Below, one piece after another: positions 14,076-62,800 of a stretch of 64,000 nt of DNA. Positions within the stretch are counted from its first letter, which is position 1, and each line of letters opens with the position of its first letter. The position numbers were made by a program, and so were the translations under genes. The DNA lies in NCBI GenBank assembly GCA_037447605.1, contig CM074816.1, forward strand, positions 883,873 through 947,872, read 5' to 3'. This stretch comes from Zygnema circumcarinatum SAG 698-1b (taxonomy: Eukaryota; Plantae; Zygnematophyceae). The notes beneath the pieces are model-generated. The model saw only the letters and a program-made list of their open reading frames with translations. It did no database searches and was not told the origin of the DNA.

Positions 14076-16474
14076 TTACGGGAGTTCCAATTCTACTGGA
14101 GACTGAAATGTATGGTGCGACTCTGTTTTCTGTCCGAACAATTCACGGTAGTACAAAATCTCCCGTTCAAAACTGTGCCCCCCCCCGCAGTAACCTGAAG
14201 CGCTGTAGAAATCTTGCGCTGCAGCGCAAATGAGCTTGTCGAGAATTCCTTGCAGGCCATTGTCGATTGCTTCCAAAGGCTCCAAAGTGTAATTAGAAAA
14301 GCCCCGAAAGTGACCCAAAGTAAGCGGATGATGCTCCTTCACAATGTCCTTCATACAGGCGATGGCTACATTGGGAGAGGCAAAAGAGTAAGTATACACT
14401 TGAAACGTCGCCGGAGAAATATCGCTCGCTATATAAAACGCTGGATCGGGCACGTTGACATATGCCGACATCAGCGACTTTTTAATACTCTCACAACAGA
14501 AGGTTAACCTTTGGTCTCTTAAAGTCTCCTCGACTATTGAGAAAGTCGTCCACTCCCATCTCAAATGGACTCCCACCAAGCGGCCTCCAAAGTCCTCCTT
14601 TGCCACCTTCGCCAAGTCAATCAATGCAAGGGAAAACTGCACATCGTCCAAATGAGTCTCAAAGCTCCCATCAACGGCGCCCTCCCAAGTATTCTTCTCA
14701 AAGATGAGAAGGTTGGCCTCAATTGAATTCACTCGTTCAAGAAGTTCGTCTGTCCTAATGGCTCCTTCTGACAGCCTTTCGCCGACACTTGGTCGAAACA
14801 GAGTCAAAGTGTTGGAAGCATTGGGAGCCACCCCGTGAGTGAGAGCCATTAAAGGGAGCCCGCGGTGAACATTTGAAGTATAATATTCCATCTCGCACAG
14901 ATTATGGGTCCTCCTCATACAAAGGTAGTGGACCTTTGGCACAATTCCAAGGCGCAGCATTGACCTCACATAGAACTCGTAAGTCACCCAATCGACCTGC
15001 TTCCCAACTTTCTTCGCATCAAAATAAGTACAATACGGAAAAGTTTGATACATAGCAATGTTGCTGTGTCCCACACGAGGAAGAATGAGTACTCGGCCAG
15101 TCTTCTTAGCCACAAAGATGACCTCACTCATATGAAGGCGGGCTTTTGAGAGCTGCTCTGGAAGCTTGAACACGGCCAAAAACGAGGAAGCCTTGAACCT
15201 CCGAACCGACTGCACGTAGATTGAAAAAAAAAAAAAACATTAAACCATAAATAATCGCAGAAGGCAACATCAAGTATGACAGCACGCAAACACTGAAATC
15301 GGTTCCAAATAATATCTTTATTGAAAACGAACTATTCCCTGCGTTCCTCCTCCCCCTCCCCCTCCCCCTCCCGTTCCCCCTCCCCCTCCCGTTCCCCGTT
15401 CCCCCTCCCCCTCCTCCCTCCTCCCTCCCCCCTCCCCCTCCCCCTCCCCCTCCCCCTCCCCCTCCCCTCCCCTCCCCTCCCCCTCCCCCTCCCCCTCCCC
15501 CTCCCCCTCCCCCTCCCCCTCCCCCTCCCCCTCCCCCTCCCCCTCCCCCCCTCCCCCTCCCCCTCCCCCTCCCCCTCCCCCTCCCCCTCCCCCTCCCCCC
15601 TCCCTCTCCCCCTCCCCATCCCTCTCCCCCTCCCCCTTCCCCCTCACCCCTTCCCCCTCCCCCCTCCCTCTCCCCCTCCCCCATCCCCCCTCCCCCTCCC
15701 CCCTCCCCCTCCCCCTCCCCCCTCCCCCTCCCCCCTCCCCCTCCCCCCTCCCCCTCCCCATCCCTCTCCCCCTCCCCCTCCCCCTTCCCCCTCACCCCTT
15801 CCCCCTCCCCCCTCGTTCCAAAAGGTTGTTTCCGCTTTGTCATTTTTTACTTCCAGCAATACCATGCATTTCCACTAACTTGGTTTAAAACTTTAAATTC
15901 TTAACCACTCCCTCCCTTTCTTCTCCTCGTATGCTCGTTCACTCTCTCCTCCTCTCCTCCTTTTTCTCCCTCTCTCTCCAATTCCCTCACTTCTCTAACA
16001 CTCCCCATTCCAATCTTCCTTTGTCCCTCCCCCTCATCCTCTCCGCCCTCCACGTCCAGCTGCTGCCTCTCCCTCCCCTCCAAACTATCATAATAAAATT
16101 CCGATAAACTTGTCTCCTAATCCCACGCTCCCCCCAACCAACCGACCTACCATATGCCTCGACGTGTCCCCCATCTCCACCGCACAAAGCGGGCTGTCCA
16201 CCGGCACCCCGCCACGTGGCAACATCTCGAACGTCCGCCGATCTGGACCGTCCAGATTCCACGTCCTCGCCCGCGCGGGCCTCTCCACCGTCCCGCGGTC
16301 CGTCATGCGCTCGAGCACCGCCGCCGCACGTGCAAACTCGTCCGCCGCCACCGCCTCGAAGCGCCGCAGGACGGAGGCCGCCCACTCGCGCTTCGCCAAA
16401 GTGGTGTTCGCGGCGGCCGCGGGGCCGAGGACGAGGGATAAGCAGCAGAGAAGGGACAGGCGGAGGGCAGCCAT
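14076..16474 (-). CDS. O-fucosyltransferase-like glycosyltransferase with N-terminal signal peptide/anchor
   Basis: Exon 1 (16474-16151) begins MAALRLSLLCCLSLVLGPAAAA. The large exon 15209-14076 has EQLSKARLH..VAKKTGRVLILPRVG, VGVHLRWE, FYIASD and GILDKLICAAAQDF..SFEREI, matching recalled O-FucT family motifs. A small middle exon near 15875-15852 is possible. Confidence 0.7.
15345..15812. repeat. (CCCCTC)n / (CTCCC)n pyrimidine microsatellite in the O-FucT intron
   Basis: Seen directly; it produces the spurious Gly/Pro ORFs in the track. Confidence 0.95.
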
Positions 16475-21268: not shown

Positions 21269-22769
21269 GAACCTCTCGGTGCCGAACTGAAGCTCCCTCC
21301 CTCGACCTCTAAAAAATTGGTCTTTCCCTCAATTAAAAAAATGCTTCTAACATTTGTGAGAGAGCTGCAGGACGAGCGCGAGCCTTTCAGAAAGCCGAGA
21401 GGTGCAGCTCTAGTTAAATATGGGGAAGGAGGGGCAGCGGGCAGCACTGAAATGTTTTACGGGCACGTTGGAAAGGGACCGACAAGGAGAAAAATGGTCG
21501 GGCAGGCACAAAAATGCTGACATGGCCGATCCTGAGTGGCTTCTGGTGAACGGGCAGGTCGAAAAGATCGATCGTTGGTTGGAACCGACGGAAGATCTGG
21601 AAGGTTCGGAAAGGCTGAAGGCGCACCAAGCCACGAATCTTGCCGTATGATTCTGGGGAAGGAGAAATGTTTTCTTTTTGTTTATTAGCCGTCCGATTGA
21701 ATCTCTGATGCATCGGACGGTGCGGGTACCAGTTCGGGCAGAAAGGAAAAAAACAGGTCAAGCCAATCTGCGTCCTGGACAACCACGTCAGCGGACCAAA
21801 AGTCGGCCAGGGTGGATCTGGAAAGAACTGCATGAACTGGATTGCCACGTGGCAGACAGGCACGAAAAGGCGCCGGGTTTTTTGGAGAGCCGCCAGGCAG
21901 GATGCGCCACGTGGCAGTTTTCTCGCGTCAAGGTCGAGGCGGCCGCGGCAAGCATTCTTGTGCTGCCCCCAGAGGCGCGATTGGCTGGGCAGCGGCTGCC
22001 CGCTGAAAATTCTTTTTATAGCGGAGGAACACGTGACGGACGGTCGGTCTCTCGTTGGAAGCAAACAATCATGTGCATGTTAACGTGGACGACCGCAAGC
22101 TGATTGGTCATGACGCGCCGCGTGGCACATATGCATAGCGACACGTCAGTGAGCATGGACTGAAACTGCGAATACGTTATGCTGCAGCGCTCTATGAGAA
22201 CGCGGCCAGTTCTACCGGCGACCGAACTGTAGCAAAGGAACGAACGGGTGGCCACAAATCCGTCACCACCCGACGGAGCTGGACATGGAGGAACTCTCAA
22301 GTTGTTGTTCAACAACAAAGCCATCGTATGCTATCATGGCCCACTTTCATCGCCCAAACAAATGAGCTTTCCATTGCTCCAGGGAACTGAACATGTTCAG
22401 CCGCACAAGAACGGTTCATTGGACACTGCATGTGGACGCCGTCCCGTTCAAGCAAGGGTCCAGCCTCGTCACCAAAGCCCAGACCATGATCATCCATCGT
22501 ACATTCCATGGATGGGCATGGCATGACACGTGATGACATGACATGCATGCATGTGCAGCCAATCACCACATGATAAATCACCTGACATGAACTGAAGGTT
22601 CGCAGTTGCACTTCCGAACTATTCGGTTACAACACAACGCAACTGTCAACTGCCAGTGACAAAGAAACAAGCTCTCTAGACGCACACAAAAAAGGACGAG
22701 GTTTGCTATTTGAGGGTTTTGGGGGTTAGGGTTTTAGGGGCCCTCTCCAGGGAAGACAGGCGGCGGAGC

Positions 22770-22855
22770 CCCCCGAGGTTCCGCCGCCCTTTTTTTCAGA
22801 CCGCGCTTCGCCCCTTTAGAGGGCTTCCCAGCGCAGCCGTCACGCAGCCTCGCCC
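22770..22855 (-). promoter_or_regulatory. SECIS element (GUGA core, type II) in the GPX 3' UTR
   Basis: Minus strand GUGAC-GGCUGCGCU-GGGAA-GCCCU-CUAAA-GGGGC-GA-AGCGCGGUC-UGAA (22843-22795). It has a 9-bp helix II (7 Watson-Crick plus 2 G-U pairs), a GA/GA quartet, an unpaired AA and an apical mini-stem. It lies 3' of every candidate GPX stop. Confidence 0.82.
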
Positions 22856-22880
22856 TGAAGATTTATACCCCATTTGTACC

Positions 22881-25800
22881 CTAATCGCCCCACTTCCTCA
22901 AAACGCATTCAAGAAAATTGACAAGAACGAACTCACTATAGCCCATAAACATCATCACCACCATCATCATCGACGACGAGGAGGAATGGTTAACTTTTGG
23001 TGACTGAAATGAAAAGCGCTTAAGGAGCTCCCAAGTAAACTCGCTCCTTTGCAGGAAGGGACCTGCACAGGGCAGGGGGCGGCCGCACAGGGCAGTCAGA
23101 ACCGCCCTGCAAAAGGTCCATTGTTTAAAATGAAGATTAAGATTTTTACCATTAAAAAATATTACTATTAGGGAGGGACATTTTTGAAGTGCGCACATTC
23201 CATTGAGAGCCGCCAGCACATCTTTTTCGAAGTTGAGAGGGTCTGCCGCCGGCTTATAGCGGCGAATAGGATTGCCCTCGCGGTCGATGAGGAACTGCAG
23301 CAAGCGAGGGAGGGAGGGAGAGAGGGAGGGAGGGAGAGGGAGGGAGGGAGGGAGGGAGAGAGGGAGAGGGAGGGAGGGAGGAAGCGGGTCAGCGCACTGG
23401 CTTGACTCACAGGGCTTAGTCGAGTCATCATTTTTACCCCCCCCCCAAAAAAGGCGGACTAGTCCTTAGTCAAACTAATCCAACTAAGACTTAGGGTATT
23501 TAGGGTGAGGAAGTTGACAGGAAGTAAAGCTCAAACTAACCGTGCTGGGTTTCACTTGATACTGTAAAGTGATCGAAATAGCTTCGAAGGATAAGACTTA
23601 GCGAAGAAAAAAAAAACGGTTTTGTGCCCTTACCTTTACATAGTTCCACTGCGTGGTTCCGCGAAACCGGTTTTTGAAGCAATATTTTTTTTTGCCAAAT
23701 ATGTCACATGTCACATTCACCAGCAATCCAAATCCCATACAATAAGCACAAGATACAATATTATCTGATTTTTGAAATTTAATCACTTTCAGAAGCAATC
23801 GATCATTTGAAGAATTTTGGTTCTAGGGTCTGTCCCATTTTTAGGGTTTCCAGGCTCACCTCTATCTCCCCGGGCTGCCTCTTTTTGAGAAATCCGTACA
23901 GAGGATGCATTCCGGGCCCCTTCACTTCCAGCTGCTCCCTCTCCACTCCCTCTCTCTCTCTCACTACACATGCTTCCCTTACATAGAAATACTGGAAAAT
24001 GCAAAGCTGTTTCATTCGTAGGACTTTTATCTTTTAGGGTTTTATGCTTTAGAGGACACCCGAGTTGGGATGTATGGAGAGAGGAAAGAAAAGGTCGAAG
24101 AGGGAGGAGGGGAGGGAGGAAGGATGAGCAAAGGGGAGAGAGAGAAGGGAGGAGAGTGGGAAGGGAGACGCAGAAGAGGGTAGAGAGAGAAGGGAAAGGG
24201 AGGAGTTACCTTATCGAATACTGGGAACTGAAAGAAGTGAGGCCATTCGCACAGAGAGAAACGAACCACATAGAACTGTTAGGAATTCCGGAACCCTAAT
24301 TTTGTGCAGACACCATCTCTTCATGATGAACTTTAGAACATTCTTCCATTTTGAAAACATGAAAGGAATAGATAGGAACGATACGATGCATTGCTGCTAT
24401 CAAAATCATTGAAATTTTAAAAGCAATTTATCTTTTTCGCATGGAGGACACAGGAAGGATTGATTCGATATTCAATATATATGTATCGAAATAATTCGAA
24501 ACAAATAATAATAATTCGATATTGTGAATGCGAAACACATAGACAGTGAGGCAAACTGTCTGACCTCAAATCCAAACTTGTAGTACGCATATTCCCGCTC
24601 TTCATCGCTTGACCCCGGAGCCTGCCCCCCAAACTGAAACCCTAATTCTGCAAATTGTGAGAAACCTTAAAAGATTCAAGTTCCTTTAAAATTTCATGCC
24701 CCTCCTTTTCGAATACAGTCCTACAATATTTAACAATTTGTGTATTGTCCAGCGAAGCTTAATCATCCATTCAGACCCCGGGTCTAGGAGGGCAGTCCCT
24801 GCTTGCATGGCTCAAGCAAGTTCAAGTCAAGAAGGTGAGAAGTAGATGATTTTTGAGAGCCTAAAAACCTAAAATATAGATAAAGATTTGAAAGCCTTTG
24901 CTTCTTACCTGGTTGCAGGGGAAGGCAAGCAACGTGAACCCCTGTAACCCATTTTTTACAGATAGAACGAGTAGGAACAATCTTCAGAAAGGGTCTGTAG
25001 AGGAATGCTTTCAAGCCATGAAAATGCTCAAACTTTAACAAACAAAAAAAATGCAGTTGAAACACCACACCATGTGGTAAGACTGTGCAGCATCGACCAA
25101 AGTAAACAAGTGAGACAGGAGAACAGGTTTAACACAACAGCTCAAGAAGGAAGAGAGAGAAGGAAGAGAGAGTGAGAGAGGGAGATGATAGAGGGAGAGA
25201 GAGAGGGAGAGGGAGAGGGAGAGGGCGAGGGAGAGCACGGAATATATGGCTCACCTGGTCTCGATACTTATTCCACAAGTACCGCAGACCTGCACTCGCC
25301 CACTCTCACATCTCAGAAAGGACAGAAAGAAACAGCGATGCAGGCCGAGATCTCAGTATGTCGCTGTGATTTTAAAATGCAAAATTGACCAAATAATGGA
25401 AAAAAACCGGTCGTAGCCTGCTGCTTCCTTGCTTCAAGTACATGCGATTATCTATAGAGTTGCATTATTCAGAGAGCAAGAAAGGACCTGGATAGTTCTG
25501 CACAACAAAGCAGCACAAGAGAGATATGATAAGGGCCAGGAATACGACCGAAAGAACAAGCACGGAATCTCATATTACATCTATATCCATCTGAGGAGCA
25601 ATAAGATAGTTTCCATTCCTATAACCCTTTACTGCAGGCTAGGGATCAAGAGCCCTGCATGTTTATAATGAGCAGATTGCATTCCCTCTCACCACGTTCT
25701 GCAGAGGTCAGGCAGAAGCGATGTTCATCACAACGGACACCTGTCAAGGCACGCATTTGAAAACAGGGAAATAGAACGTTACTGAAAATTCTTAGCCCAA

Positions 25801-27434
25801 GTACAAGAAATTTTCCTTAACAGTAACAAACCAGCCTCCTGAGTTAGTACTACGCAGGGAATATCCTGAGAGAAATGGGGATGCAGAGTAGTGCATAGGA
25901 AGTCTCTTTGGCTTTTAGGGTTCCGGCTTAGGGCTTCGGACTATTGCATGAAAGCAGGCATACCATGTTCTTGTATGGCGAAAGAGGCGCGTCCTCCTCC
26001 TTGTACGTCATGGTGAAGTCATACACCGACTTTACCTCACCACCTTCAGCAACTGAAACGAAAGCAAGACGACAAAGACATCTTAGAAGAACGTACACCT
26101 GGCATTGAATCCAAACTCGCCCTCTACACATGAAATGGAAAGGACGAGAAAAAACAAGCAGGGCAAGTGGCCCATGGTTCCATGTACATACAGAAGTTCT
26201 CAGAAAATAGGCTGCAGTATGCATGTGTGTGGGGTAAAGAGTGAGTGAGAGAGAGTGAGAGACAGAGACGGAGAGAGGGGGGGAGAGAGAGAGGGGGGAG
26301 GGGGAGGGGGGGAACGAGGGAAAGTGAGGGAGGGGGAGGGAGAGAGAGAGGGAGCGAGGGAGCGAGGGAGAGACGGAGAGGGGGAGAGAGAGAGAGAGAC
26401 GAAGAAAGAGGGAGAGAGGACGAGCATGAGAGCGGGAAGAGAGAGGGAGGGAGGCAGAGGGGGAGCGGGATAGATGGACAGGGACAGGGAGAATGAGAGG
26501 GGAAGAGAAAGAGAGACAGAGTGAGAGATGCACATACCAGTCGTTCCTTTCATGCGGCCACATACCTTGGGGAAGAAGCAGAGGGGAGAAAATAGAAATT
26601 CCGGTGGCTCCTGCTGCCAAAAGAGCGTCCCTTCTTTGCAAGCCCTTCTCCAAAGGCTCTCCGTCCGGGCCCAGTAGAGAGGCTCCCTTGGAGACGGACG
26701 CGCCTCTTGTATCATGTTTGGAGACTTTCGAAGAAGCTGCAGTAACCCTTGCAGCTGCTCCGCAGCCATGAATAGGGATGGAGAGCCTGGCTGGCTTCAA
26801 ATTACGGACTGCAAAACGAAATTACATAAAATTTTACAATTAAAAAATAATAGCGAAGGAAAGGAAAACGAAGCGGACGTCACTATTGGGGGTGATATTC
26901 ACGAATGTTGAGTGCAGGTGAAGTGAAAACATAGTTACATGATATCATACACGTGAGTGAATGTATAGTTGTGTGAGTGGTGATGCGTTTCCATATGAGA
27001 TCGTCATGTTATGCATGCGCAAGGAATCTTAAACCTGTGCTATACACACGTACATTTTCGTGTATCCTGTTTAAAAAATGGAACTCTTTTCATGTAGAAA
27101 CAGACAGACTTTAAGACATTTCCGCCGCCATTCACATTGCATAAGACTACGCTATTATTTTTCCTGCAAAATAAAACTATCAGTAATACAAGTGCAGAAT
27201 TTTCCTGGTTCAGACCACGAACTCGGCGCTTCAGTGCGTGGTTAAGCCTTCTGACACTAAAAGCAGCTGAAAAGGAGAGAGAGAGAGGAAAGAGAGAGAG
27301 AGAAGAGAGAGAGAAAGGAAAGAGAGAGAGAGAAGAGTGAGAGATAAAGGGAGAGAGAAAGAGACGTCACCATTGAGCTCGATGGCAGGAGCGAGCACTG
27401 CAGCGGGCGGGCGCCCCCCGCAGAGGGAAGCCAT
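22881..27434 (-). CDS. GPX: Selenocysteine glutathione peroxidase with plastid transit and twin-arginine signal (about 13 exons)
   Basis: Exons: 27434-27371, possibly about 27271-27218, about 26811-26566, 26052-25964, 25740-25693, 25497-25488, 25289-25255, 24941-24909, about 24634-24566, 24227-24210, 23931-23860, 23648-23634, 23294 onward. Protein: ..QRRDALLAAG..VAEGGEVKSVYDF..VMNIASA(U)[56 protein letters not shown]. The in-frame TGA at 25710-25708 occupies the catalytic position. The last exon and stop are uncertain. Confidence 0.92.
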
Positions 27435-28282
27435 GGCTACCGCGCTACTGCTCTCCTCCCTCCCTCCCTCCCGGAGAGGAAGGCAGAGGTCCATCGTCCG
27501 TACACCATTCCGTACGGTTCTCCCTGAATCCAGTCGTCTACCGTACGACACGGCATGTTAGTCGTGTTTGCATACGTCAGGTCAGTGAGTACACGTGGCG
27601 TACGTATGACCGTCAATCTGCGGATCGAACGGTCCCCGCGGCCTCCCTCAAACGCTTGCACGATTTCGGAGCCGTTCGCTTAATTCGTGGTTTCCGAAAG
27701 GGACACGAATGGAGCGAGTAGCAAAGCAGAGGGGAATGAATGAATGAATGCCCATCCTGATGTTGTCCATGTACATTTGATGGCCTCACCATCGTGAGAT
27801 CAATAGGGAGGGTCAGACATTAACCGTGGCCATACTAAATTCCCAAATTTAGTATACTAAAAGTCAACGTTTCTTGTACGAATTCTGGGTCGGGATCCGC
27901 GGCTTCGCCGGACACAGCCGTACCGAAATGCGTACGTACAGCCAGGGGTCCTCATATTTTCCACACTGGTTTTGGCCAATAATATGAGGCGAAAATATTG
28001 ATTTTGCATATATAAGGTTCGTGTTACCAATAGACGGGCGGTATTATGTTAGAGTTTATGTTGGACCGTACGTATCGTACCGTAATATATAGCGTATCGT
28101 ACTGTATCGGCTACTACAGCTCGTACGGCTAGTACGGATAGTGCCGTATCGGGGCGTTTCGTGTCGTACCATATCGTATCGTATCGTATCGTATCGTATT
28201 GAATCCAAGAAGAAGGGTAGAAGAGCGAGCGCCTCTTACGGCGGCACGTGCGGGGAGATTAGGTGAGTTTTGCGTAAGCCTG

Positions 28283-29254
28283 TGTAGCACAAGATAAGTG
28301 GGGTTAAAAGGAGATTGCTGAGCTAGTCGCAGATGCTGTACGGCCACCCGAGCGTCCGTGCTGAAACTGACGTAAGGTTGGGGTGGTGCTGTGGGTCTGC
28401 CTGCAGCATAGAGCCAGGATCCGGGGGATTCAGAGGTACGCGCAGCGGAAGACGTAGGGATTNNNNNNNNNNCCCTTCCTTGGGGACCCTCCTCCCCTGT
28501 CCTCTCCTCGGCTAGTCTCTTAGCTAGGCTTCTAGTGATCATTGGTCATTGAGAGTAATGCAAGGCAGGATAGAGCAAGATAGGGGCTTGGCATAGTGAC
28601 AGCAGAGGGAAAACAGGACACAACTTAGATAAAGGTGGTATTTTGGAAACTCACCCCAGCCAACGGTTGGCTGGGGAATGTCATTACAATGAACGCCTTC
28701 ACCGGGAAATCTTTGTCTAATCGCTGAATGGGACGCCTAAATGCTATCGCAAGAAGAAGACTCTTTCTCTCTCTCTCTCTCTCTATCTATGGCATGGAAC
28801 TCTCTCTCTCCCCTTACTTAGCATCTGTTGCCAGAATCGAAGAGGAAGGAAAAGAAGAAAGAAGAACAAGACAACAAACCACACAGCAAATACAAAATAC
28901 TGCTTCAGCACTAAAAGACAAACAAGCATCACCGACATCCCATCTACTTAACACCCATACCAGATCTTGAGTCTTGCAGTGACAGTCCCCTCGACACAAT
29001 TGCCACCGAGGCCTGACTGACTACGCGGAGCCTCTCGGATAGGTCAATCTAATGATAATCGGGCGCCTTAGGCGTGTTCCTGAGTAGCGCCTTGCTGGAT
29101 GGTGTGTCGCCGCGGGCCGCCAACACATGGCGCCGCCTTCTCGCATCCTCCGTTGGCAGCTCCTGGATTCCGCTGATCCGTGACACGGAAGAGGCATATG
29201 TCAAGTACAATTGAACTGACGCAGATCCGTCGAACGCAGCTCCGTTACGCTACA
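28283..29254 (-). repeat. 3' LTR of gypsy element 1 (TGTAGC...TGTGCTACA)
   Basis: Homologous to 35751-36728, 37435-38433 and 59852-60838; has the terminal inverted repeat TGTAGC/GCTACA. Confidence 0.9.
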
Positions 29255-32200
29255 TCTGTAGCACATGCCGGGGGGGGGAAAACAAGCGCACGCCCCTGCG
29301 GGCGCAATGAAGAAGAGACAAAGGGCATGGAAGGAGCCAATGATGACGTGGACGGGGGGCCGCGTGAGGCGAGTCGGTGGCCGTGTGGAGAAGCTGCCGC
29401 GTACATTCGGCAATGGGGAGTATCGGCATGACCGCATCGGAAGAGACGGCCGGCTGGCGAAATGTTGGCGAAGTGGCAAAAAGTGGCGGGAATTAGAAAT
29501 GGACCAATGAGGAGTCGTCATGGCAGGGGGGGTACGGAGGATGCCGCGCTGTCGGTCGCGAACGGTCAGCCATCGCTGGCAGGAACCGCCACGTGGCCGG
29601 CACGATGGCGCGATCCAGCGCTACGCCAGCCCGTGCCATGAGAGTCAGGGCCCTCCGCAATGGGGGCGCTCAACCCGGGATCTCCACTGGCTCAGCAGAC
29701 TAAGGGGCCCTGACCACGGGGAGCCCGCCAGCCGGTTGACCAATTCCTGAGCCAAATGAGCTTGATGTGGCGCTACCTTGACTGGGCGAGAGGGACTGTG
29801 CGGCGCCTCCTAAGCTCGGTGAGTTGTCGCTCAACGCTCGTCGAGGTGGTGGGAGGCCATGGAATCTAGGGTTTGGAAGTGGAGGGCCAGGAGCTGAAGC
29901 TGGGCGACCCGATCCGGGGGAGGCGCGTCATCGTGGAAGAGGGGCTCAGCAGAGAGGAGGTCAAGGGGAATGCGGGGCTTACGGCCATAGAGGAGCTCGT
30001 AGGGAGAGAAGCCCGTGAGGAGTGGACGGAGGCATCACACGTGAAGACCAGGATGGATCGCGCGAGCCCGCCTGCAGCGCCAGCCGCGGACGCACGCACC
30101 CCCGGTTGCCCGATGGCACGTTCTGCAAGCCGATTCTGCCAGGGGGAGAAGGGGCTCAGAGGTGTGGTGATGACTGTTAAGCTCTGCAGGAGCTAAATGC
30201 CCCTTGTATTTGGTGCCATTGTCAGTGACAGCAGTAGGAGAGATAGTGCGGTGACCATGGCCGCCAGGAGGCGAGCAGAGTGGATGGAGATGCTGAGGTC
30301 CTGCGATGAACTTCTACTCACTTGGTGGTACCTGTCCACGTGAGGAAGACCCGGACAGCCCATAGGGGTGCTGAGCCCTGGGGGATAGAAAGGACGATGT
30401 TCCAGTTCGTGACGCCTCGCATGGGGATCTCACCCATCTCCAGGGGGTTGATGGTTCGGCAGGGAGAAGCGCTTTGTGCGGCTTAACGAGGATGTTTCCG
30501 ATGTAATGGCTTACCGTGCCATGGCAGGCCTGTGATAATAGTGCCTCCCTGGAGGCAGGCGACCATCTCTTCCGCCAAGGCGAACCCCGCTGGCTTGATC
30601 GCAACATCCAGAATCTCCATGCGTTCATTGGGGAAAGGAACAGGAAGGCCAGAGGGGAGGTACAGTATCTGTCCGTCATCATCAACAGAGAAGTGCCGAG
30701 CGCGGCGGAGCAGCCGAGCCCGCTTGGTGTCCGTGACAAAGGGGGGTAATGTGCGGGTCATGACGTAGCGCAGAAGGGAGGAGTCTGAATGGACGTCATT
30801 GGCGCTGGGGAAATGGGGAGGAAGTAAGGGAGCGTCGCCATCGTCATCCATGAGGAGTTCCCACGGATCCGCATGGGGGTGGCCGTGGGTGAAGTCAGGG
30901 TCCTCCCAGCGATGGAGGGTGGTGGCGGTGGCCGGAATATCGATCAGCCCATCTGCGAATAGGACATCATGCAGGGCTTGAGCGGCAATAAAAATCTCAA
31001 TGGGAAGATGCTCAGGGTTCAAGAGGGTGGGTGGAGGGATGGGTTCAGGAACGGCCGGATCGTGACAGAGGAGGGGAGCCGAAGGATTGCGACTGAGGCC
31101 ATCAGCATTGCCGTGACTACGGCCGGGACGGTGAGTGACTTTGAGTACATTGTACTCCTCCAACTTCATCACCCATCGTGCAAACTTAGGGCGTAGGGTA
31201 GCCATAATGTGCAGCCAGGTGAGGGGCATGTGGTCAGTCCGGATGATAACGGGCTGGTAGGCCGTGAAGAGCTTGAACTTCTCGAGTGCCCAGAGGATAG
31301 CCGCGGCCTCACCCTCAGTAGGGCTGTACTTGGTCTCGGTTTCTGAACAAACCCTGCTAGCATAACTGACCGGGTGTTCCCCATCCGAGAATGCTTGACT
31401 GGCCACTGCCCCAAAGCCCGTCTGACTCCAGTCAGCGTCAATAATGGTGGGCAGGGTGGGGTCGAATTGATGCAGACAAGGAGCTATAGGGCACTCTGAG
31501 TGCGCGTGAAGGCCAAATCCTGCCCCGGCTCCATCGGTCTGGGATCTCCGTGCTCTCCAAGGCATGTAGGGGACGTGCAATAAGGGCATAGCCCTTGATG
31601 AACCGGCGATAGAATGAGGTGAGCCCCAAGAAGGACTTGAGCTGAGTGAGGGTCTAGAATTGGCATAAGGAGAAACCCCGTTTCAATTTGTCGAGCTATG
31701 GTTCCAGGCCATCTGATGCGAGGGCGGTGCCTGAGACTGAGTGATCTCTGCGCTGGACTCGGAGCTTTGGGGTGCAATCTTCAAACGTGCACTAATGAGC
31801 TGCGCAGGACTTGGCGTATGTGACCAGGTGGGAGGACCAGTCCTTGCTGTGGAGGGAGGCATCATCCACGTAAGGCTCGCAGAAGGCGCGACAGGGGCCG
31901 AATACTTGGTTGGCCAGGCGCTGGTGAGTCTGGCTGGAATTCTTGAGCCCAAAGGGAAGCACTGTCCACTGCACGAAGCGTGTGGCTGTGCGCAGCCCTG
32001 TCTTGCAGCGATCGGCCTGCCGCAGGGGGATCTGCCAGAAGGCTTTCTGCATGTCAAGTGCCGAGATGATCGACTTATCAGGGGAGACGCCGTGGACAAT
32101 TAGGTCCACATTTGGTAATGTGTAGGGATTCTGACTCCCATTGCATTCAGTTTCCGGAGTCCCCACAGAAGCGAGTGTGCCATCCGGTTTTGCAGCACTG

Positions 32201-35200
32201 GGCTGCTCACGCCCTTCTCCAGGTTCCATCAGTCCTGAGTCGTTTCTGCAGTTTTGACCGCCGCTCCACATCGCCTTTGACGGGCGGAGCGGCAGGGAGT
32301 CATGGTCACCATGGGAGGTCATCCTGGCATCCATATGGTGCTCAATCAGGTGGGTCTTGCCGATGTCAAGTGAATGTCGTGCGAAAACTAGGTGATTTCG
32401 GCGCAGCACTTGTCGTAGTTGAGAATGCTTGATCGTGTCTGAGAGTACTGCTGGCCCCAATCGCATCTGCGCCTCTATTTCCAGCCACTCCTCATCACTG
32501 ATGGTCTCATGGGGGGGAAAGCTGGGTGCAGGTAGCACTGGCGGCAACAGTTCTTCCGTCGACGCACCGAGAGCTGGACTCGGAGAAGAAGGAGGGGGAG
32601 TCTCGTCATCGGTATCAGAATTGGCCGATCCATGAGAAGAATGGGGGCTGCTGACTCGAAATGCATGGTGATTTTGCAGAGACCCGCCGCGCGTGGCGCC
32701 TGGGGAGGGCGGGAGACAGCATCTTTGAGGACCATGGGGAAGGAGCAGCTCGCCCGCAGGAGTACAAGTGCAGCTGACATGCATAAAGTTGATCGTGCTC
32801 CCATTCAATGAGCCAATTTGAGCTGGCTAGGATAGAATAGTGCGAGTGGCCGCCATGGCGCATTCACTGCTGGCTCCCATCCTCACACCGACTACCATTG
32901 TGGCGCTGCCCACCCCTTCACTAAGGCCCCCCCTCAACCCACATATCGGGGAACCGGGCTCGAGCGTCCTTGTCCAACCTGTTTCATCACAGGCCGGCAG
33001 AGGCAACGCGCGCATAGCCCCCGTGTCGATCATGGCTTTGCTGGGATGACCGTTGAGCCATACATTGACGATGATCCGCACGTTGGGCGTTGGGATGAGA
33101 GGGAGGATCTGAATCTGGCGAGGAGGATGGCGAGGGGAGCGGACTGGGTCCGGCGGAGACGCCGTAGCCATGTGGTGGATATCGGGCCGCGAGGGATGTC
33201 TGGAGGACATGCCACTGGAATGGGAGGCCGCAGGTGGCCTCGCAGCGCCAGCTTTTGAACCTACGGCGCACATCACGAGTCGGCACGATGGCGACAAGCA
33301 TGCGAGCCACGTTGCATGTAGTTGATGAACCATGCGTTTAATCAGGAGAGGCCGCTGCCGGGGGGAGTGGTCACGATCGGCTGCTTGGGGGTAGAAACGG
33401 GCTGCTCGAGGACGATGTGGAGGGTTGACGTGCATCTCTTCGGTCGCCGGTGGCGTCGGCTCTGGCTGCGCCGCTGTCGGCTCCTCTTCATTGAGATCTT
33501 CAATTTCCTCCTCAGGCAGGGATCCCAAGGGATGACCCGTGAAGGGAGGGATGACTGAAGTTCTTCCTGACAGGGTGGCTACCGTGGAGCTGTGTCCTTG
33601 AGAACCGCGCGAGACGCAGGAGGATGGGAGGGGATGGGGAGAATGAGGATCGCTTCGGTTGACAGGGAGCCTGCGCAGGGCAGTTGCAATCTCGGCAATC
33701 CGGGCTTGTGCATTAGCTTCAAAAGTGATGGGGGATTCTGACAAAGCCGGTTGAAATGCCGCGGCAACCTGGGCAGTGCGTGATCGGGCAGCAGGATCGG
33801 GCTCAGCACCCAATACGTTTGACAGGGAAGGGGAGTCCATGGGGTGCAGATGGATAGGTGGTCGCTGCAGGATGGTGTAAGCGGGTGAAGGAGGTGGAGG
33901 CGGGCGAAAGGGAGCTGGTGTTCTCGGTGGTGTGGGAGCAGCCGGGAGCATATCCATGAATGTGATCTCTGCAGGTGAGTTCCCTGCTGCTGCCTCTTTC
34001 CCCTTCCGGGCCTTCTCACTTGAGAGTCTCCGCATGCACACACGGGCATCGTGTCCCGTGATCTGGCAGAAGGTGCAGGTCCATGGTCCGCAACGCAGCC
34101 GCGGATTATGATTCAGGCCGCAGGCAAGACACACGCCCTCTGGAACCCCTGCCTCTGTCATCCGACGGCGCAGATCGGCCCTAGCAGCTTCTCTCTCTTC
34201 GGGTGTGCGATCGGAATAAGGTGGAGCCCGATATCCTGGACGAGAAACATCTGGTATGTGAGGATTCACCGCCGGCTCAATGGGATGCGCCGGATCATGA
34301 GGGTATGGGGAAATGTGAAGGGGCTTGATCGCGCTGGCTGACAGCGAGAGGGCTGCACCATAAGGGCTGCCCCCACGTCTGAGCAGGGATGCTGGAGAAG
34401 ATGGCTTGTTTTAGGAAGATGCAGCGAGTGATCACACATGCTGATCCTGTGTCTTCAGGACGCTGCAGAGGCCGACTCTGTTGTGGACCTGGGCGTTCAT
34501 GTAACGTGGTCGCACATGTCGGTTGCCCCTCATCCTTCCTGACGCTCCGCCCGCCCTAACAATGCCTGACCGTGGTGGTCGCTCAGTTTACGAATTGAGG
34601 CGGAGATCCTTCTTGCGATGGCCTTGGAACTACTGACACTTCGAAAAGTCAGGCAAGTTCTCGATTGATCGCCACGGCGCAGTAGTGCGCCGCCTGAATT
34701 CAAAGAGTTGCCTGATCACTGCAGCATTCTACGTAGCGAAGTTGGCTCAGCACAGCTGGTTCGCATTCTAAATCCAACGCTGCTCTGCAGCTGCTGAACG
34801 CGTCCCTTGTCAGGGTGGCGACGACATCTGCTTTGTGCCAGTTTCGGGACAGCTTCCAGTTGACTGCCTCGCCTTCCAGCGCTCCAAGGGCAAGCTTGAT
34901 CCACTGGTCCTCCTTCAGGTCTGCTTGCGCTGCCTTCTCCTCAAGGTGTCTCAGCCAAGACTCTGCATCTTCCTGCTTGCCGGTGAAGCCTCTAGTGATG
35001 ATGCCCGTGGTATCCCTCACCTCACTCTTTTCAGGAATCAAGGCTATCAGTTTTGTCATCACTCTTTTCCATCTGCCGGCAACTGACATTGACTCGTGTG
35101 TCTCCCGCAGGCCGGTTTGAAGTGCAGGGTCCATGCGACCGTCCTGCCCGCCCTGAAGCGCTCGCCTCGGACTGCGGAAATGGGCAAGTGTTAAGCGCAG

Positions 35201-35738
35201 GTGAGGGTGCTCTCATGATTCTTGCTCCGCTGAGTGACGCTGCCCTTGCAGTGCTTGAAGGGACTCCTGGTGTGCTAGTTATCCGATCGACACCCGCTGG
35301 GTCTGCCTCTGCGGGCGTGGGGACCTCAGGTTTGACGCATCTCTCTTCACGCATCGCGGCCGCTGTGGAGTGGGCCCTGGGGGGGGCTCTGCAGCTTGAC
35401 CATCGCGTGCGCACGCGAGGCGAGTTCTGTGGCCATTGTGACTGCGAGGACGGAGTCCGCTGCAACCTTCAATTGACTCCTCATCTGCTCAAGGTAAGCC
35501 AGACCGGTAAGAGTTCTTCGTTATGCCCATCTTCAGCCTCTCTTGACCGCCTCCTTCCTCTGAAATCGAATCCGTCTTGCATTTCCACTCGCCGCTCTTC
35601 TCCCTTGAGGTGCCAAGTCTTCATTTAATACTCATGAAGATCTGCTTGTCCCTCTTGCCGCAGTTCATCCATGGCGGCCGTGCATATGGGTTAGGATCGG
35701 AGCCTCATGTATCAAGATGCATCTGTACTTAACCTATA

Positions 35739-36728
35739 GCCTTGATACCAAGATAAGTGGGGTTAAAGGAGATTGCTGAGTGATTGCAGGATTACCGTGG
35801 ACGGCCACTGGAGCCTTCCCTGACCAAACGCTGACCCGCAAGGTTGGGGTGGTGCCGTGGGCTCGCGCGCACATAGAGCCAGGATCCGGGGATTCAGAGG
35901 TACGCGCAGCGGAGACGTAGGGATTCTGAAGACGCTCCCACCCGCCGCTTGGACTCTAATGCTAAATAGCCCTTCCTTGGGACCCTCCTCCCTGCCCTTC
36001 TCCGCTAGCTTTAGCCAGGCTTCTAGCGATTCACTGGGTTATTCAGAGTAATGCAAGGCAGGATAGAGCAAGATAGGGGCTTGGCATAGTGACAGCAGAG
36101 GGAAAACAGGACACAACTTAGATAAAGGTGGTATTTTGGAAACTCACCCCAGCCAGCGGTTGGCTGGGGAATGTCATTACAATGAAATTGTCTTCTCACT
36201 GAAATCTTTGTCTAACTGGGCTGCAACGGGATGTCTAAAATGTATAATCAGCAAGACATCTTTCTCTCTCTCTCTCTCTCTCTATCTATGGCATGGAATC
36301 TCTCTCTCTCTCCTCACTGAGCATCTGGCTGGCCCCAAAAACTGAAGGAGCAAAAGAAAGAAGAACAAGACAACAAACCACACAGCAAATACAAATACCA
36401 AGCCCAGCACTAAAAGACAAACAAGCATCATTGCATCCCACCCATTAACAATGAGAATAGACCTCAGCCCTGAGCTCATCTTGTTGGCCAACTGCCCACC
36501 AGAGGCCTGACTGACTACCGTGGAGCCTCTGAGAGGCCCAATGAATGACACGCGGCCTGAAGGCGGGTGTTCCCGAGTGCGCCTTGCCGCATGGTGCCGC
36601 GGCCGCCAATAGATGGCGCCGCGCCCTCCACCGCTGGCAGCCGCATCCGCGACCCGCTAACACGGAGGAGGCATATGTCAGTACAACTGAGTTGACGCAC
36701 ATCCGTCACGCAGCTCCGCCACGCTACA
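35739..36728 (-). repeat. 5' LTR and tRNA-iMet PBS of gypsy element 1
   Basis: Starts TGTAGCG at 36728 and ends ...CCCCACTTATCT directly followed by TGGTATCAAGGC, a degenerate TGGTATCAGAGC. Confidence 0.88.
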
Positions 36729-39248: not shown

Positions 39249-40693
39249 GTTGAGCCCCGATCTGCCGGCCGCCCGGGCGCCACCACGCCTCCATTGGAAC
39301 TCCGTTCTACCTCCTCGATGAACATTATCTTCACTCTCTCACACTTATCTCACTTCACCATAGCCCATAACCCCGCCAGTAATGAACGCTAGAGACGAGC
39401 ACGCCGAAATCACAATAATTTGTGAGAGTATAGAGAAAGCTCACGGCTCTAAAACTCCTTTATAAGAATAAATACCCACATGAAGCTCTCCCTCTCACTA
39501 GCTACTTCTCCTTACTGGCCTTGCAACACACAAAGGCAACAAAGAACACTACCCAGAAAGCAAAAGTAATGTATCAAAGTCAATTTCGGACCACAAAGAG
39601 TCTAATGTGGTTATCCCACATAACAAAGCTAAACCCTATATACGCTGGCGTACGCAGTTACGCGACATCTTCCTTGTTGACCAATGTCACCGCCACGCCG
39701 TCCTCATGCTCAAAGAGTCGGCACGCTGCTCAACATCCACTATGTCTTTCAGAAACTTACGCCAGCACCGTAATTCAGTCGTCGTCCGCATAGCTCGCCC
39801 ATCTGAACTTGTCGCCCGCTTCGAAGCGCAGAACTTCCGGGCCGCCGCCCTATCGCCCGCCGAATGCTACAAGATGTTCAAGCTACAAGACTGCATACTA
39901 TTTCTCCAAGGGCTGCCCGCGACGAAATTCCGCTGCCGTGATTTCAAGGCTGTTACACTTGTCCGCTGTATTGCTTACTGCTCCCTCCGTAGTTGACTCC
40001 GGGCTACAGCCTCGCTGGATCAAGCATTTCCAGGGTCTGACGCGTTCCTACTTAATATCACCTATCCTCCCGGTACCGGTGCCGCATCTGCCACCTATTT
40101 GGCCCCGACCAGATTTCCTAGAACACTACTAGCAGATCTCATGCTTCCCAATCGAGATCACAACAGCAGGTGAACCCGCATAAATGTCTAACTATAGCAC
40201 ACTAACACTAACAATCCCCCTCTTGGGCCTCAGTTCCTCATGGGCCCTAGCCCAATGAGTCTGCTATTCACTAGTAGCGTCTCACCACTAACTCCTTTAG
40301 TCAACATATCCGCAGCCTGCTCCTTCGTCCCCACGAACTTCACAACAATCATCCCCTCCTCTACCAATTCTCGCACATAATGGTATTGCACTCTAATGTG
40401 CTTTGTCCTCTTATGAAACACAGGGTTTTCAACAAGAGCTATGGACGACTGATTATCCGTGAACAAAGTCAAGGGACGTTGTGGCCTCTTACACTCATCA
40501 AAGAAATGTTGGAACCAAACTCCCTCCTTCTCACGCGCGACATGCTCCCCATGTACTCTTCGTGCTAGACAACGCGAATCAACTCGTGAGCTTCGGAAGC
40601 TCCATGAGATCGCCTCCACCGCCGCCGCACACAACCGAGGTCGATCGCCGGCGCGTCCACGCCACCTCCCCGCCAGAGTCGGGTGTATCCCAT
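39249..40693 (-). mobile_element. Ty1/copia 3' fragment: RNase H, PPT and 3' LTR (about 40213-39249)
   Basis: LFTDNQSSIALVENPVFHKRTKHIRVQYHYVRELV..EQAADMLTKG. PPT AAGAGGGGGA followed by TGTTAG at 40213. TATA-like CTTATAAAGG inside the LTR. The fragment is cut by the N-gap at 40694. Confidence 0.85.
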
Positions 40694-40793
40694 NNNNNNN
40701 NNNNNNNNNNNNNNNNNNNNNNNNNNNNNNNNNNNNNNNNNNNNNNNNNNNNNNNNNNNNNNNNNNNNNNNNNNNNNNNNNNNNNNNNNNNNN
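40694..40793. other. Assembly gap (about 100 N); shorter gaps of about 10 N near 5926, 16516, 28463 and 57851
   Basis: Seen directly. Confidence 0.98.
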
Positions 40794-40954
40794 TCCCTGA
40801 CGGCGCATAAGCCGAACTCTCTGCTTCTGTCCCAAACGTCTTCCAGGGTGGCTCAGTGACCTGAGCTGCGTAACAGAGAAAGAGTCTATACAAAGGTAAT
40901 TCAATAAATTCCTTCTCTATGGCATAACGCCCTACCCCCTCCCCCCAACTCCTC

Positions 40955-59851: not shown

Positions 59852-62800
59852 TGTAGCGTAACGGAGCTGCGTTCGACGGATCCGCGTCCGTTCAGTTGTA
59901 CTTGCCATACTCCTATGCAGTGTCACGGACCGGCCTGATCCAGGAGTGGCCGACGGAAAATGCGAGAAGGCGGCGCCAGGTGTTGGCGGCCCACGGAACA
60001 GCACACCAGCCAGCAAGGCGCACTCGGAACGCCGCATAATGCCGCCGATTGTCATTTGTTGACCTATCATAAGGCTCCACGTAGTTAGTCAGGCCTCTCA
60101 GTGGGCAGTTGGCCAATCAGGGGCTGTCACTGCTAAGGCTCAAGATCTATTGTCAGTGTTAAGTAGATGGGATGTCAGTGATGCTTGTTTGTCTTTTAGT
60201 GCTGGGCTTAGTATTTGTATTTGCTGTGTGGTTTGTTGTCTTGTTCTTCTTTTCTGCCTCTTCAGCTCCAGCAACAGATGCTAAGTATGAGAGAGAGAGA
60301 GAGAGTTCCATTGCATAGAGAGAAAGAGAAAGAGTCTTCTTGCTGATAGCATTTAGACATCCCATTCAGCCCAGCCAGACAAAGATTTCAGTGAGAAGAT
60401 ACTTTCATTGTAATGACAATCCCCGGCCAACCGCTGGCTGGGGTGACTTTCCAAAATACAACCTTTATCTAAGTTGAATCCTGTTTTCCCTTTGTTGTCA
60501 CTATGCCAAGCTACCATCTTGTGAAATCCTGCCTTATGCTCCGCCCAATGACCAATGATAACTAGAAGCCTAGCTAAGAGACTAGCCGAGGAGAGGGCAG
60601 GGGAAGAGAGCCCCCAAGGAAGGGCTCTTTGCGCATCGGGTCCAGCCGCCGGTGGGAACATCTTCAGGATCCCTACGTCTTCCGCTGCGCGTACCTCTGA
60701 ATCCCCCGGATCCTGGCTCTATGCTGCAGGCAGACCCACAGCACCAACCCAACCCTTCATTAGTTTCAGCACGGACGCGCGGGTGGCCGTACAGCACCTG
60801 CAACTAGCTCAGCAGTCTTCTCTTAACCCCACTTATCTTGGTATCAGAGCTGAAGGTTTTGCAGATCCACGTACCTTGATACGTGAGGCTGCCGATCCTG
60901 TGACCCGTGTCACAGCCGCCATGGATGAAGAGCTGCAACAAGAGGGACAAGCAGATCTTCATGAATTTTCAGATGAAGACTTAAGACATCAAGAAGAGCA
61001 GACGATAGGAAATCCAAGGACGGATTCAGACTCAGAGGAAGAAGCAATCAGAGAGACTAAAGATGGGCATCACAAAGAGAACCCTTATCCCAGTTTGGCT
61101 TACCTTGAGCAGATCGAGTCGATTGAAGAACTGCAGCGACTCCATCTAGGCAGTGATGGCCATAGGTTTCGCTGGCGATATGCACGCAGGATGATCAAGC
61201 TTGCAGCCTGCCCAGTTGCTGTAACGGCCGCAGATGCCGTGAAGAGAGGAGTTCCGTTCGAACCTTGAGATCCCTTTGCGGCCCGCCAAGACAAAACCCG
61301 CAAAGATGTCGAGTCGAGTAACTACTCCGCCAGGAGTCCCCTGCGAGGCTGCTCAGAGGCGGCACGCAGTCCTCAAGCAAAGCAGATCACAAAAGCACCC
61401 TCACCTCCCGGCGTTCACAACTTACCCATCCGGCAGCCCCAGGCGAGGGGCTTCAGGGGCAAGGGTAGGACGATCGCCAGGACCCTCCAGCTTTCGCACC
61501 AACCTGCAGAGAAGAACACGAATCAGATCTGAGTTTCCCAGCAAGATGGAAGAGATAATGACCAAACTGATAGCAATGATTCCTGAAAAGAGTGAGGTGA
61601 GGGATACCACGGGCATCACACGGAGGCTTCACCGGCAGCAAAGATCAGGAGCGTGGCTGCGACACCTTGAGGAAGAGGCCACAGCGGCAAGCCTGAAGGA
61701 CCCATCATCAGTTGGCTTTAGAAGCACTGGAAGGAGAGGCAGTGAGCTGAAGCTCTGGAAGCTGGCACAGCGCGGATCTCGTCAGCTCGCAGGGACACAT
61801 TCAGCAGCTTCAAGCAGCAGCACGATTTCAATGGATCAGCTGTGCTGAGCCAACTCGCTACATAAAATGCAGTGATGAGCGGCTGTTGAATTCATCAGAC
61901 GTTTTCTGCACATGGCAACTATACGAAATTTCTATGACTTTCCCCGAAGCCTCAGTGAGTCCGCAAGGCCATGGCCGAGAAGGGTCTCCACCTCCGATCG
62001 TGAGTGCGCGACAACCCACCAGCGAGATGCCCAGGCCTTGTTAGAAAGGGCGGAGCAAATTCAGAAGGAGTCAAGGGAGGGCGAGCCAGACATGCAAGCC
62101 ACATTCATGACAGCACAGATCCACGACAAGATCGGCTCTACCAGCAGTTCCTGAAGACACAGAATCAGCAGTTGTCTGATCCCTATGCTACATCTTCTAG
62201 GAACAAGCCGTCTTTCTCCGGCATCCCTGCTCAAGACGTCCGGTCAGCCCCTGTGGTGCAGCCTCTGGCTATAGCCAGCACGACCAAGCCCCTTCCCCTT
62301 TCCCCATACCCTCATGATCCTGCACATCCCATTGAGCCGTCGGTGAATCCTCACATCCCAGATGTTTCTCCAGGATCTCAAGCCTCCTATCCTGGCAGCC
62401 CCGAAGGAGAGAAGCTGCAGGCCAATGGCCGTGGGATGGCAGAGGCAGGAGCTCCAAGAGGGCGTCTCTCTAGCCTTGACCTCAAATCGTGATCCGCAGA
62501 TTCCCATTTCCAACCATGATCCTGCACCTTCTCAGATCCCAAACGTGAGTCTCCGTGTATGCCTAGAGAACTGAGTGAGAAGGCCGGGAAGGGGAGATAC
62601 AGCGCGGGAGCTTCAGGCTCCAGGGGTCACTTCATGGATATGCTCCCGGCTACTCCCACACCGCCGAGAACTCCAGCTCCCTTTCGCCCGCCTCCACCTC
62701 CTTCACCCGCTTACACCATCCTGCAACGTCCGCCTATCCACCTGCACCCCATGGACTCCCCTTCCCTGACAAACGTATTGGGTGCTGAGCCCGATCCTGC

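Follow-up and report, generated by a model that had tools for sequence, protein, structure and literature searches.

An in-frame UGA at the peroxidatic site of a Zygnema glutathione peroxidase gene most probably encodes selenocysteine

On the minus strand of a 64,000-nucleotide stretch of the genome of the streptophyte alga Zygnema circumcarinatum SAG 698-1b (contig CM074816.1, positions 883,873 to 947,872; hereafter the window), the reading frame of a glutathione peroxidase (GPX) carries a TGA at the position of its catalytic residue. An initial annotation, made from the letters of the window alone, took this codon to specify selenocysteine (Sec). Does the TGA end the protein, or is it translated as Sec in a functional peroxidase? 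We conclude, with a probability of roughly 90%, that the locus is a genuine, expressed Sec-GPX gene with UGA at its peroxidatic site and a conserved SECIS element.

The exon in question, minus-strand positions 25740-25693, reads VSVVMNIASA-TGA-PLQNV as claimed at the outset, and is bounded by an AG acceptor and a GT donor. Chaining the adjacent exons through GT-AG sites yields an open GPX frame in which the TGA, at 25710-25708 and codon 143 of a 278-codon model, is the sole internal stop. The exons 3' of it encode NYPGLRYLWNKY..., FPCNQFGGQ, FPVFDK and WNYVKFL with zero other stops. In a MAFFT alignment with the GPX proteins of rice, Nymphaea and Diphasiastrum and with two bacterial GPX, the TGA shares its column with the peroxidatic Cys of the NVASxCG motif, and the spacing from this residue to the NY motif (U/C +6) is identical in the window protein and the aligned plant and bacterial enzymes, precisely the register that the initial annotation had proposed. 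The complete catalytic tetrad can be assigned, namely Sec (the U aligned with Cys), the Gln of FPCNQF, and the Trp and Asn of EWNYVKF. The same alignment bears out two atypical traits noted earlier: Pro follows U in place of the usual Gly, and the FACTRF of plant GPX is replaced by YAYYKF, so that the resolving Cys is absent. Among the algal sequences compared, both are features of the whole clade.

Searches with the mature protein, carrying X at the Sec position, returned 445 GPX-family matches, the best at 1e-77. PF00255 (GSHPx) is annotated on all but one of the 120 matches listed and on all of the best matches (1e-77 to 1e-66); the PF00255 membership of the window protein rests on this Pfam annotation of its homologues. 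When an orthologue 88% identical to it (P0002) was compared with solved structures, the best matches were the GPX4-type entries 2obi, 2vup and 2p5q (E 1e-32 to 1e-23). A search of the ESM Atlas gave generic GPX fragment clusters only.

To follow the codon into mRNA, RNA contigs from four public runs (X1-X4) belonging to three studies were placed on positions 22200-27600 of the window. These contigs confirm all splice junctions from exon 26808-26566 through the last exon, through the joints 26566/26052, 25964/25740, 25693/25289, 25255/24941, 24909/24633, 24565/23931 and 23860/23294. Letters inserted at three of these joints reveal microexons, one of 10 nt inside 25693/25289, one of 18 nt inside 24565/23931 and one of 15 nt inside 23860/23294. 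The resulting model, 278 codons long, is divided among 13 exons:

27371-27434, minus strand: putative exon 1, start ATG at 27434-27432 and the N-terminal part of the chloroplast transit peptide (GT donor at 27370; RNA depth)
26566-26808, minus strand: exon 2, remainder of the transit peptide and twin-arginine motif, LQRRDALLAAGATGISIFSPLLLPQVAEG (joint 26566/26052 in four runs)
25964-26052, minus strand: exon 3, beginning of the mature GPX domain, KSVYDFTMTYKEEDAPLSPYKNM (both flanking joints seen in four runs)
25693-25740, minus strand: exon 4, active site VSVVMNIASA-U-PLQNV with the TGA at 25710-25708 (spliced contigs; alignment with the Cys column)
25488-25497, minus strand: exon 5, 10-nt microexon, NYP-G (letters between 25292 and 25693 in four of four runs)
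25255-25289, minus strand: exon 6, LRYLWNKYRDQ (RNA joints)
24909-24941, minus strand: exon 7, GFTLLAFPCNQ, region of the catalytic Gln (RNA joints; alignment)
24565-24633, minus strand: exon 8, FGGQAPGSSDEEREYAYYKFGFE, without the resolving Cys of plant GPX (RNA joints; alignment)
24210-24227, minus strand: exon 9, 18-nt microexon, FPVFDK (letters between 23933 and 24565 in X2-X4; joint 23931/24210 in X1)
23860-23931, minus strand: exon 10, LEVKGPGMHPLYGFLKKRQPGEIE (RNA contigs)
23634-23648, minus strand: exon 11, 15-nt microexon, WNYVK, catalytic Trp and Asn (15 unplaced contig letters lying between contig pieces 23860-23933 and 23195-23294; AG/GT sites)
23197-23294, minus strand: exon 12, FLIDREGNPIRRYKPAADPLNFEKDVLAALNG-M (joint 23195/23060, cut +2, in four of four runs)
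22341-23062, minus strand: last exon, SLPAKERVYLGAP, TAA at 23022-23020 and 3'UTR (contig ends)

The join between exons 1 and 2 would keep the frame open and give the junction peptide NVRNL, as in the orthologue L002. At the other end, the transcripts reveal an intron, 23196-23063, that splits the apparent last exon. The later exons are intact, as first proposed, but the gene end implied by that proposal was incorrect: the protein terminates in ...NGMSLPAKERVYLGAP, followed by the stop TAA at 23022-23020 and a 3'UTR extending to about 22341-22372, the transcript contigs ending at 22341 (X1), 22363 (X2) and 22372 (X4).

These transcripts bear directly on the possibility that the TGA never reaches a ribosome because the 48-nt exon is skipped, the codon is edited in RNA, or the assembly is in error. 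Skipping would preserve the frame, 48 being a multiple of three, and most public models of the orthologues do omit the exon; it would, however, delete the active site. In all four runs the contigs join 25964 to 25740 and continue from 25693 onward at full transcript depth, with the TGA unaltered. Across the four runs, no joint skips the TGA exon and no variant letter appears at 25708-25710 at the 10% level. We consider this explanation close to inconceivable.

The depth of the transcripts bears on a second reading, namely that the locus is a pseudogene or null allele in which the TGA, a stop in the standard code, truncates the product to a 142-residue fragment without the catalytic centre. Exon junctions downstream of a stop normally trigger nonsense-mediated decay, yet despite its many junctions downstream of the TGA this mRNA is abundant, the spliced contigs having a depth of 145-390 compared with 4-22 for contigs that contain introns.

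Comparative evidence weighs further against a pseudogene. The 11 orthologues come from ten transcript contigs, among which nine sequences are distinct, and from the genome of Klebsormidium nitens. The closest matches, at 77-88% identity, are open reading frames on transcript contigs of about 1 kb that start 1-5 codons past the Sec position. Extended upstream in frame, 11 of 11 orthologues, from both streptophyte and chlorophyte algae, have TGA at the Sec codon (contigs L001, L002/3/4, L005, L006/7, L008, L009, L011, L012 and L013; L010:4024-4026 in the K. nitens genome), and PLQNVNYPGL follows it without variation. The check that the initial annotation had proposed, an alignment of UGA with Cys across orthologues, thus places every one of these codons in the column occupied by Cys in the Cys-GPX.

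Between the window and the streptophyte orthologues, dS exceeds 1.5 or is saturated or not computable, whereas dN is 0.07-0.15 after the UGA, with omega of 0.02-0.10 where computable, and 0.18-0.35 over the 34 codons upstream of it. The UGA is therefore not only aligned and conserved among species but flanked by coding conservation on both sides, and the 135 codons that follow it are under strong purifying selection. An invariant TGA amid saturated synonymous sites fits a translated codon under selection and is at odds with a stop.

A third reading grants translation but not Sec. The UGA could be read through by a near-cognate tRNA as Cys, Trp or Arg, or the Sec pathway could insert Cys when selenium is scarce, giving a Cys-type or inactive GPX. 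One metagenome gene model (P0008) indeed writes W at the codon, which shows only that the frame is open. Against this reading, a one-base change to TGT or TGC has occurred in none of the 11 lineages despite saturated synonymous sites, although at least one would be expected if Cys could do the same work. In addition, green-algal Sec-GPX is cited as verified by mass spectrometry in Chlamydomonas (PMC9404770). Plain read-through, moreover, needs no dedicated, conserved SECIS, and such an element is found in the 3'UTR:

22786-22853, minus strand: type 2 SECIS element in the 3'UTR (subthreshold Rfam SECIS_1 match; covariance model built from orthologues only; covariation)

Its core pairs GUGA (22843-22840) with UGA (22799-22797), and it has a 9-bp helix II, an unpaired GGGAA and a 5-bp apical stem, the core starting about 177 nt past the stop codon and about 585 nt past the UGA. 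In terms of the published core consensus UGAN/KGAW (PMC3753652), the element has UGAC/UGAA, together with helix II and the unpaired AA within the GGGAA loop. Its weak points are a poor helix I and a strong GC hairpin directly adjoining.

Rfam models by themselves give little, and the window's subthreshold match is the point at which a pseudogene gains some credit. At gathering thresholds Rfam finds zero matches in the window; with relaxed settings SECIS_1 gives a sole match, 22851-22783, at 24.7 bits (E 0.046 in 1.4 kb), short of the gathering score of 35. The relaxed search also found no SECIS match at E<=1 in seven orthologue loci, and the elements were therefore aligned by hand and modelled by covariance. 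A low score against a consensus model is not disqualifying, since the authors of SECISearch3 excluded the Ostreococcus SECIS from their own consensus model on account of lineage-specific characteristics (PMC3753652). The GUGA core, shared by the window and L013, belongs to the GUGA_AA type that is common in green algae and prevails in Chlamydomonas and Ostreococcus (PMC3473315).

The orthologue 3'UTRs carry the same pattern, RUGA-C-R-G, then 37-42 nt, then YGA, and each inter-core stretch, folded alone, forms a helix of 9-10 bp and an apical stem of 3-5 bp with AA(A) unpaired between them, the type 2 form. In the alignment of 11 sequences, 72.7% of cells pair, compared with 56% after shuffling (0 of 500 shuffles reach the observed value) and 34-51% when the partner strand is slid. 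Changes on both sides occur in 13 of 14 pairs, the covariation score is 0.51 versus 0.13-0.28, and RNAalifold finds both helices without guidance. With the window left out, a covariance model of ten orthologues (R2) detects 22853-22786 at 40.6 bits (E ~2e-8), and no other credible match over the 64-kb window; a second match to this model and its counterpart R1, at 17105-17061, was rejected, being a fragment that scores 18 bits, has AUGG as its core and lacks the apical part.

A SECIS conserved with covariation, an mRNA that retains the TGA, the TGA of 11 orthologues and purifying selection together back a selenoprotein gene as first proposed, and make a pseudogene extremely unlikely. Read-through without Sec we judge highly unlikely.

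The expectation that standard gene callers would fail on the window gene is realized in the public models of its orthologues. The Sec codon is lost from the annotated models of Mesotaenium endlicherianum, K. nitens, Tetradesmus, Chlorella ohadii, Micractinium, Asterochloris, Myrmecia, Haematococcus and Cymbomonas; most of these models skip the Sec exon, and those of K. nitens and Chlorella ohadii cross the region in garbled form. The Mesotaenium model misses the same three microexons, and the intron positions are therefore common to both genes. A gene lost in automatic annotation thereby gains a correct model, backed by RNA, that includes three microexons and a recoded UGA. Among public models, the same error is present in Mesotaenium, in Klebsormidium and in the genomes of at least seven chlorophytes.

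From these features we infer that a nuclear gene gives rise to a monomeric, GPX4-like peroxidase, in which the UGA of codon 143 would be recoded to Sec at the peroxidatic site. The type 2 SECIS of the 3'UTR would direct recoding by recruiting SBP2, EFsec and Sec-tRNA(Sec); a tRNA search of the 64-kb window returned none. Reduction of H2O2 or of a lipid hydroperoxide would leave a selenenic acid on Sec, whose recycling would presumably fall to an external thiol (GSH or a thioredoxin-like protein), because the resolving Cys of the thioredoxin-dependent land-plant GPX is absent.

Is such an enzyme unexpected in a streptophyte? The initial annotation presented it as a surprise, and here the selenoprotein itself stands while the surprise was overstated. 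Complete Sec machinery has been reported for every major lineage of streptophyte algae, the genomes of Mesotaenium and 'Spirotaenia' included, with few selenoproteins per streptophyte alga and zero in embryophytes (Liang 2019, PMC6627142); the supplementary text of that study gives no per-species selenoprotein families and none of the motifs of the window protein. Two selenoprotein genes are known from Klebsormidium, and GPX ranks with the selenoproteins that occur most widely in algae (Jiang 2020, PMC7539508). Because Sec machinery and a few selenoproteins were thus already reported (PMC6627142, PMC7539508), the window gene is a well-supported addition to the published picture of selenocysteine still in use among algae related to land plants, rather than a new phenomenon.

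The window protein resembles the Chlamydomonas reinhardtii enzymes GPX1/PHGPx and GPX2 in its GPX fold, its peroxidatic UGA-Sec and its 3'UTR SECIS (PMC7539508, PMC6627142, PMC9404770). Unlike the Chlamydomonas Sec-GPX as described, its clade has Pro after Sec and a twin-arginine presequence, and the UPLQNVNYPGL block is invariant in 11 sequences of this clade; CrGPxA, one of the Chlamydomonas Sec-GPX, has Gly after Sec (PMC3095285), and one of the two Chlamydomonas Sec enzymes has been suggested to be mitochondrial (PMC9404770). With mammalian GPX4 and other monomeric GPX4-type enzymes it shares a short, monomeric form without the oligomerisation loops of GPX1, and mammalian GPX4, like the window protein, has Sec and no resolving Cys. 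Identity to the GPX4-type structures is about 40-45%, and the window protein differs from them in its plastid- or lumen-type presequence and in having UP rather than UG.

Land-plant Cys-GPX such as poplar GPX5 and Arabidopsis GPX1/7 belong to the same family and share the tetrad and the FPCNQFGGQ and FPVFDK blocks at 44-48% identity. In contrast to the window protein, these enzymes are thioredoxin-dependent and stromal or cytosolic, with Cys for Sec and a resolving Cys (FACTRF). The pair of peroxidatic and resolving Cys that defines a thioredoxin-dependent Cys-GPX is not found in the window protein, which has U and YAYYKF.

The presequence points to an unusual destination. In ten of ten full-length aligned sequences (the window and nine transcripts) the N-terminus contains RR, a hydrophobic stretch of 15-20 residues and an AxA-like site, and in the full-length orthologues a Ser/Thr/Arg-rich region precedes the RR. 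Several annotated chlorophyte models show the same pattern from RR to AxA, one of them with KR for RR. Pfam has no match for the Tat presequence, and the bacterial TAT_signal model TIGR01409 passes only in L005, at 16.9 bits against a cut-off of 16.7, and not in the window. This layout is that of thylakoid Tat substrates and suggests import into the chloroplast followed by Tat export to the lumen. To our knowledge, the thylakoid lumen has no glutathione pool. Our literature search found no description of a lumenal GPX. If the prediction holds, the enzyme would be the first selenoprotein of the lumen, and its reductant in that compartment would then have to be sought. The conserved twin-arginine presequence is its less expected trait, and makes a lumenal selenium peroxidase directly testable. 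A possible functional analogue is Arabidopsis peroxiredoxin Q, which PMC3095285 cites as a thylakoid-lumen thiol peroxidase; it is a Cys-based member of the Prx family, whereas the window protein is a GPX whose lumenal location is predicted only.

A maximum-likelihood tree sets the gene among its relatives. The window sequence falls in a clade with 98/98 support together with Mesotaenium (Zygnematophyceae), two Klebsormidium sequences and five transcripts, its neighbours being, in order, L002 (85%), L001 and Mesotaenium; the chlorophyte orthologues lie outside this clade. Land-plant Cys-GPX and the bacterial enzymes form a separate group (100/99), which means that the land-plant enzymes did not arise from the window gene by conversion of Sec to Cys. 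Land-plant proteins reach at most 48% identity among the matches listed, and the three aligned land-plant GPX are without the U-P-L-Q-N-V block. Since the land-plant Cys-GPX are not its descendants, the Sec enzyme would have been dropped, not rewritten, at the transition from water to land.

Taken across the green lineage, these observations lend themselves to a wider reading that we regard as evenly balanced between right and wrong: an ancient, undescribed clade of GPX4-like Sec peroxidases with the U-P signature, exported by Tat to the thylakoid lumen, represented in prasinophyte-grade and core chlorophytes and as far as the algae nearest to land plants, lost rather than converted to Cys in land plants, and hidden because nearly all public gene models omit or garble the Sec exon. 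Its members differ at their C-termini. The streptophyte proteins end in PLPxKERxYLGAP and offer no candidate resolving Cys, and the chlorophyte proteins carry a tail, ECxxHPGRKVC, that contains two Cys.

The gene for the selenocysteine glutathione peroxidase (GPX) contains three microexons, of 10, 18 and 15 nucleotides, and all three are confirmed by RNA contigs:

25488-25497, minus strand, 10-nt microexon
24210-24227, minus strand, 18-nt microexon
23634-23648, minus strand, 15-nt microexon

The Mesotaenium GPX gene model lacks these same three microexons. Contigs from three of the four public RNA runs (X2-X4) also carry odd joints linking position 27472 to 23937-23944; both ends are CT-rich and of low complexity, and the joints are probably an assembly artefact at repeats.

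Within this GPX clade, the public gene models for seven chlorophyte genomes, for Mesotaenium and for Klebsormidium nitens have all lost the Sec codon, with the Sec exon either skipped or read in garbled form (locus L010:4024-4026 of K. nitens DF237305.1; protein models P0014, P0010, P0011, P0013, P0024, P0025, P0050 and P0072). In the K. nitens genome, the Sec exon and the following NYPG microexon form one fused exon.

At the amino terminus, the mature selenoenzyme is preceded by a conserved presequence comprising a twin-arginine, a hydrophobic stretch and AxA (26566-26808, minus strand; orthologue N-termini L001-L013). Judged from sequence, this presequence suggests Tat export of the GPX to the thylakoid lumen; the cut-off of the bacterial TAT_signal profile TIGR01409 is passed by one orthologue only. 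At the carboxy terminus, chlorophyte orthologues (L011-L013, P0010-P0013) bear an extension, ECxxHPGRKVC, whose two cysteines may possibly form an internal resolving pair; streptophyte orthologues lack this extension.

Directly 3' of the SECIS element lies a strong GC hairpin, which overlaps the bases aligned by Rfam as SECIS helix I. The next gene downstream appears to encode a GT8 protein of the glycogenin/galactinol-synthase type, and in run X3 one transcript contig extends out of the GPX 3'UTR, past 22200, in the direction of that gene:

22759-22790, minus strand, GC hairpin GGCGGCGGA...UCCGCCGCC
from 21266 downwards, minus strand, GT8-like gene, protein start MSRYAYVTFLTGDGDYVKG

Elsewhere in the window lie a single-exon ORF, whose O-fucosyltransferase match is weak and under the Pfam cut-off and which returned no homologues at 1e-10 in a search of 5.8 billion proteins, and retroelements, the two gypsy-type copies being related to each other:

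14076-15215, minus strand, 379-aa ORF, weak PF10250 match
28100-36000, minus strand, gypsy-type LTR retroelement copy with gag, protease and RT/RNase H ORFs
60500-64000, plus strand, gypsy-type LTR retroelement copy with the same ORFs
40230-40904, copia-like integrase fragment with an N-gap
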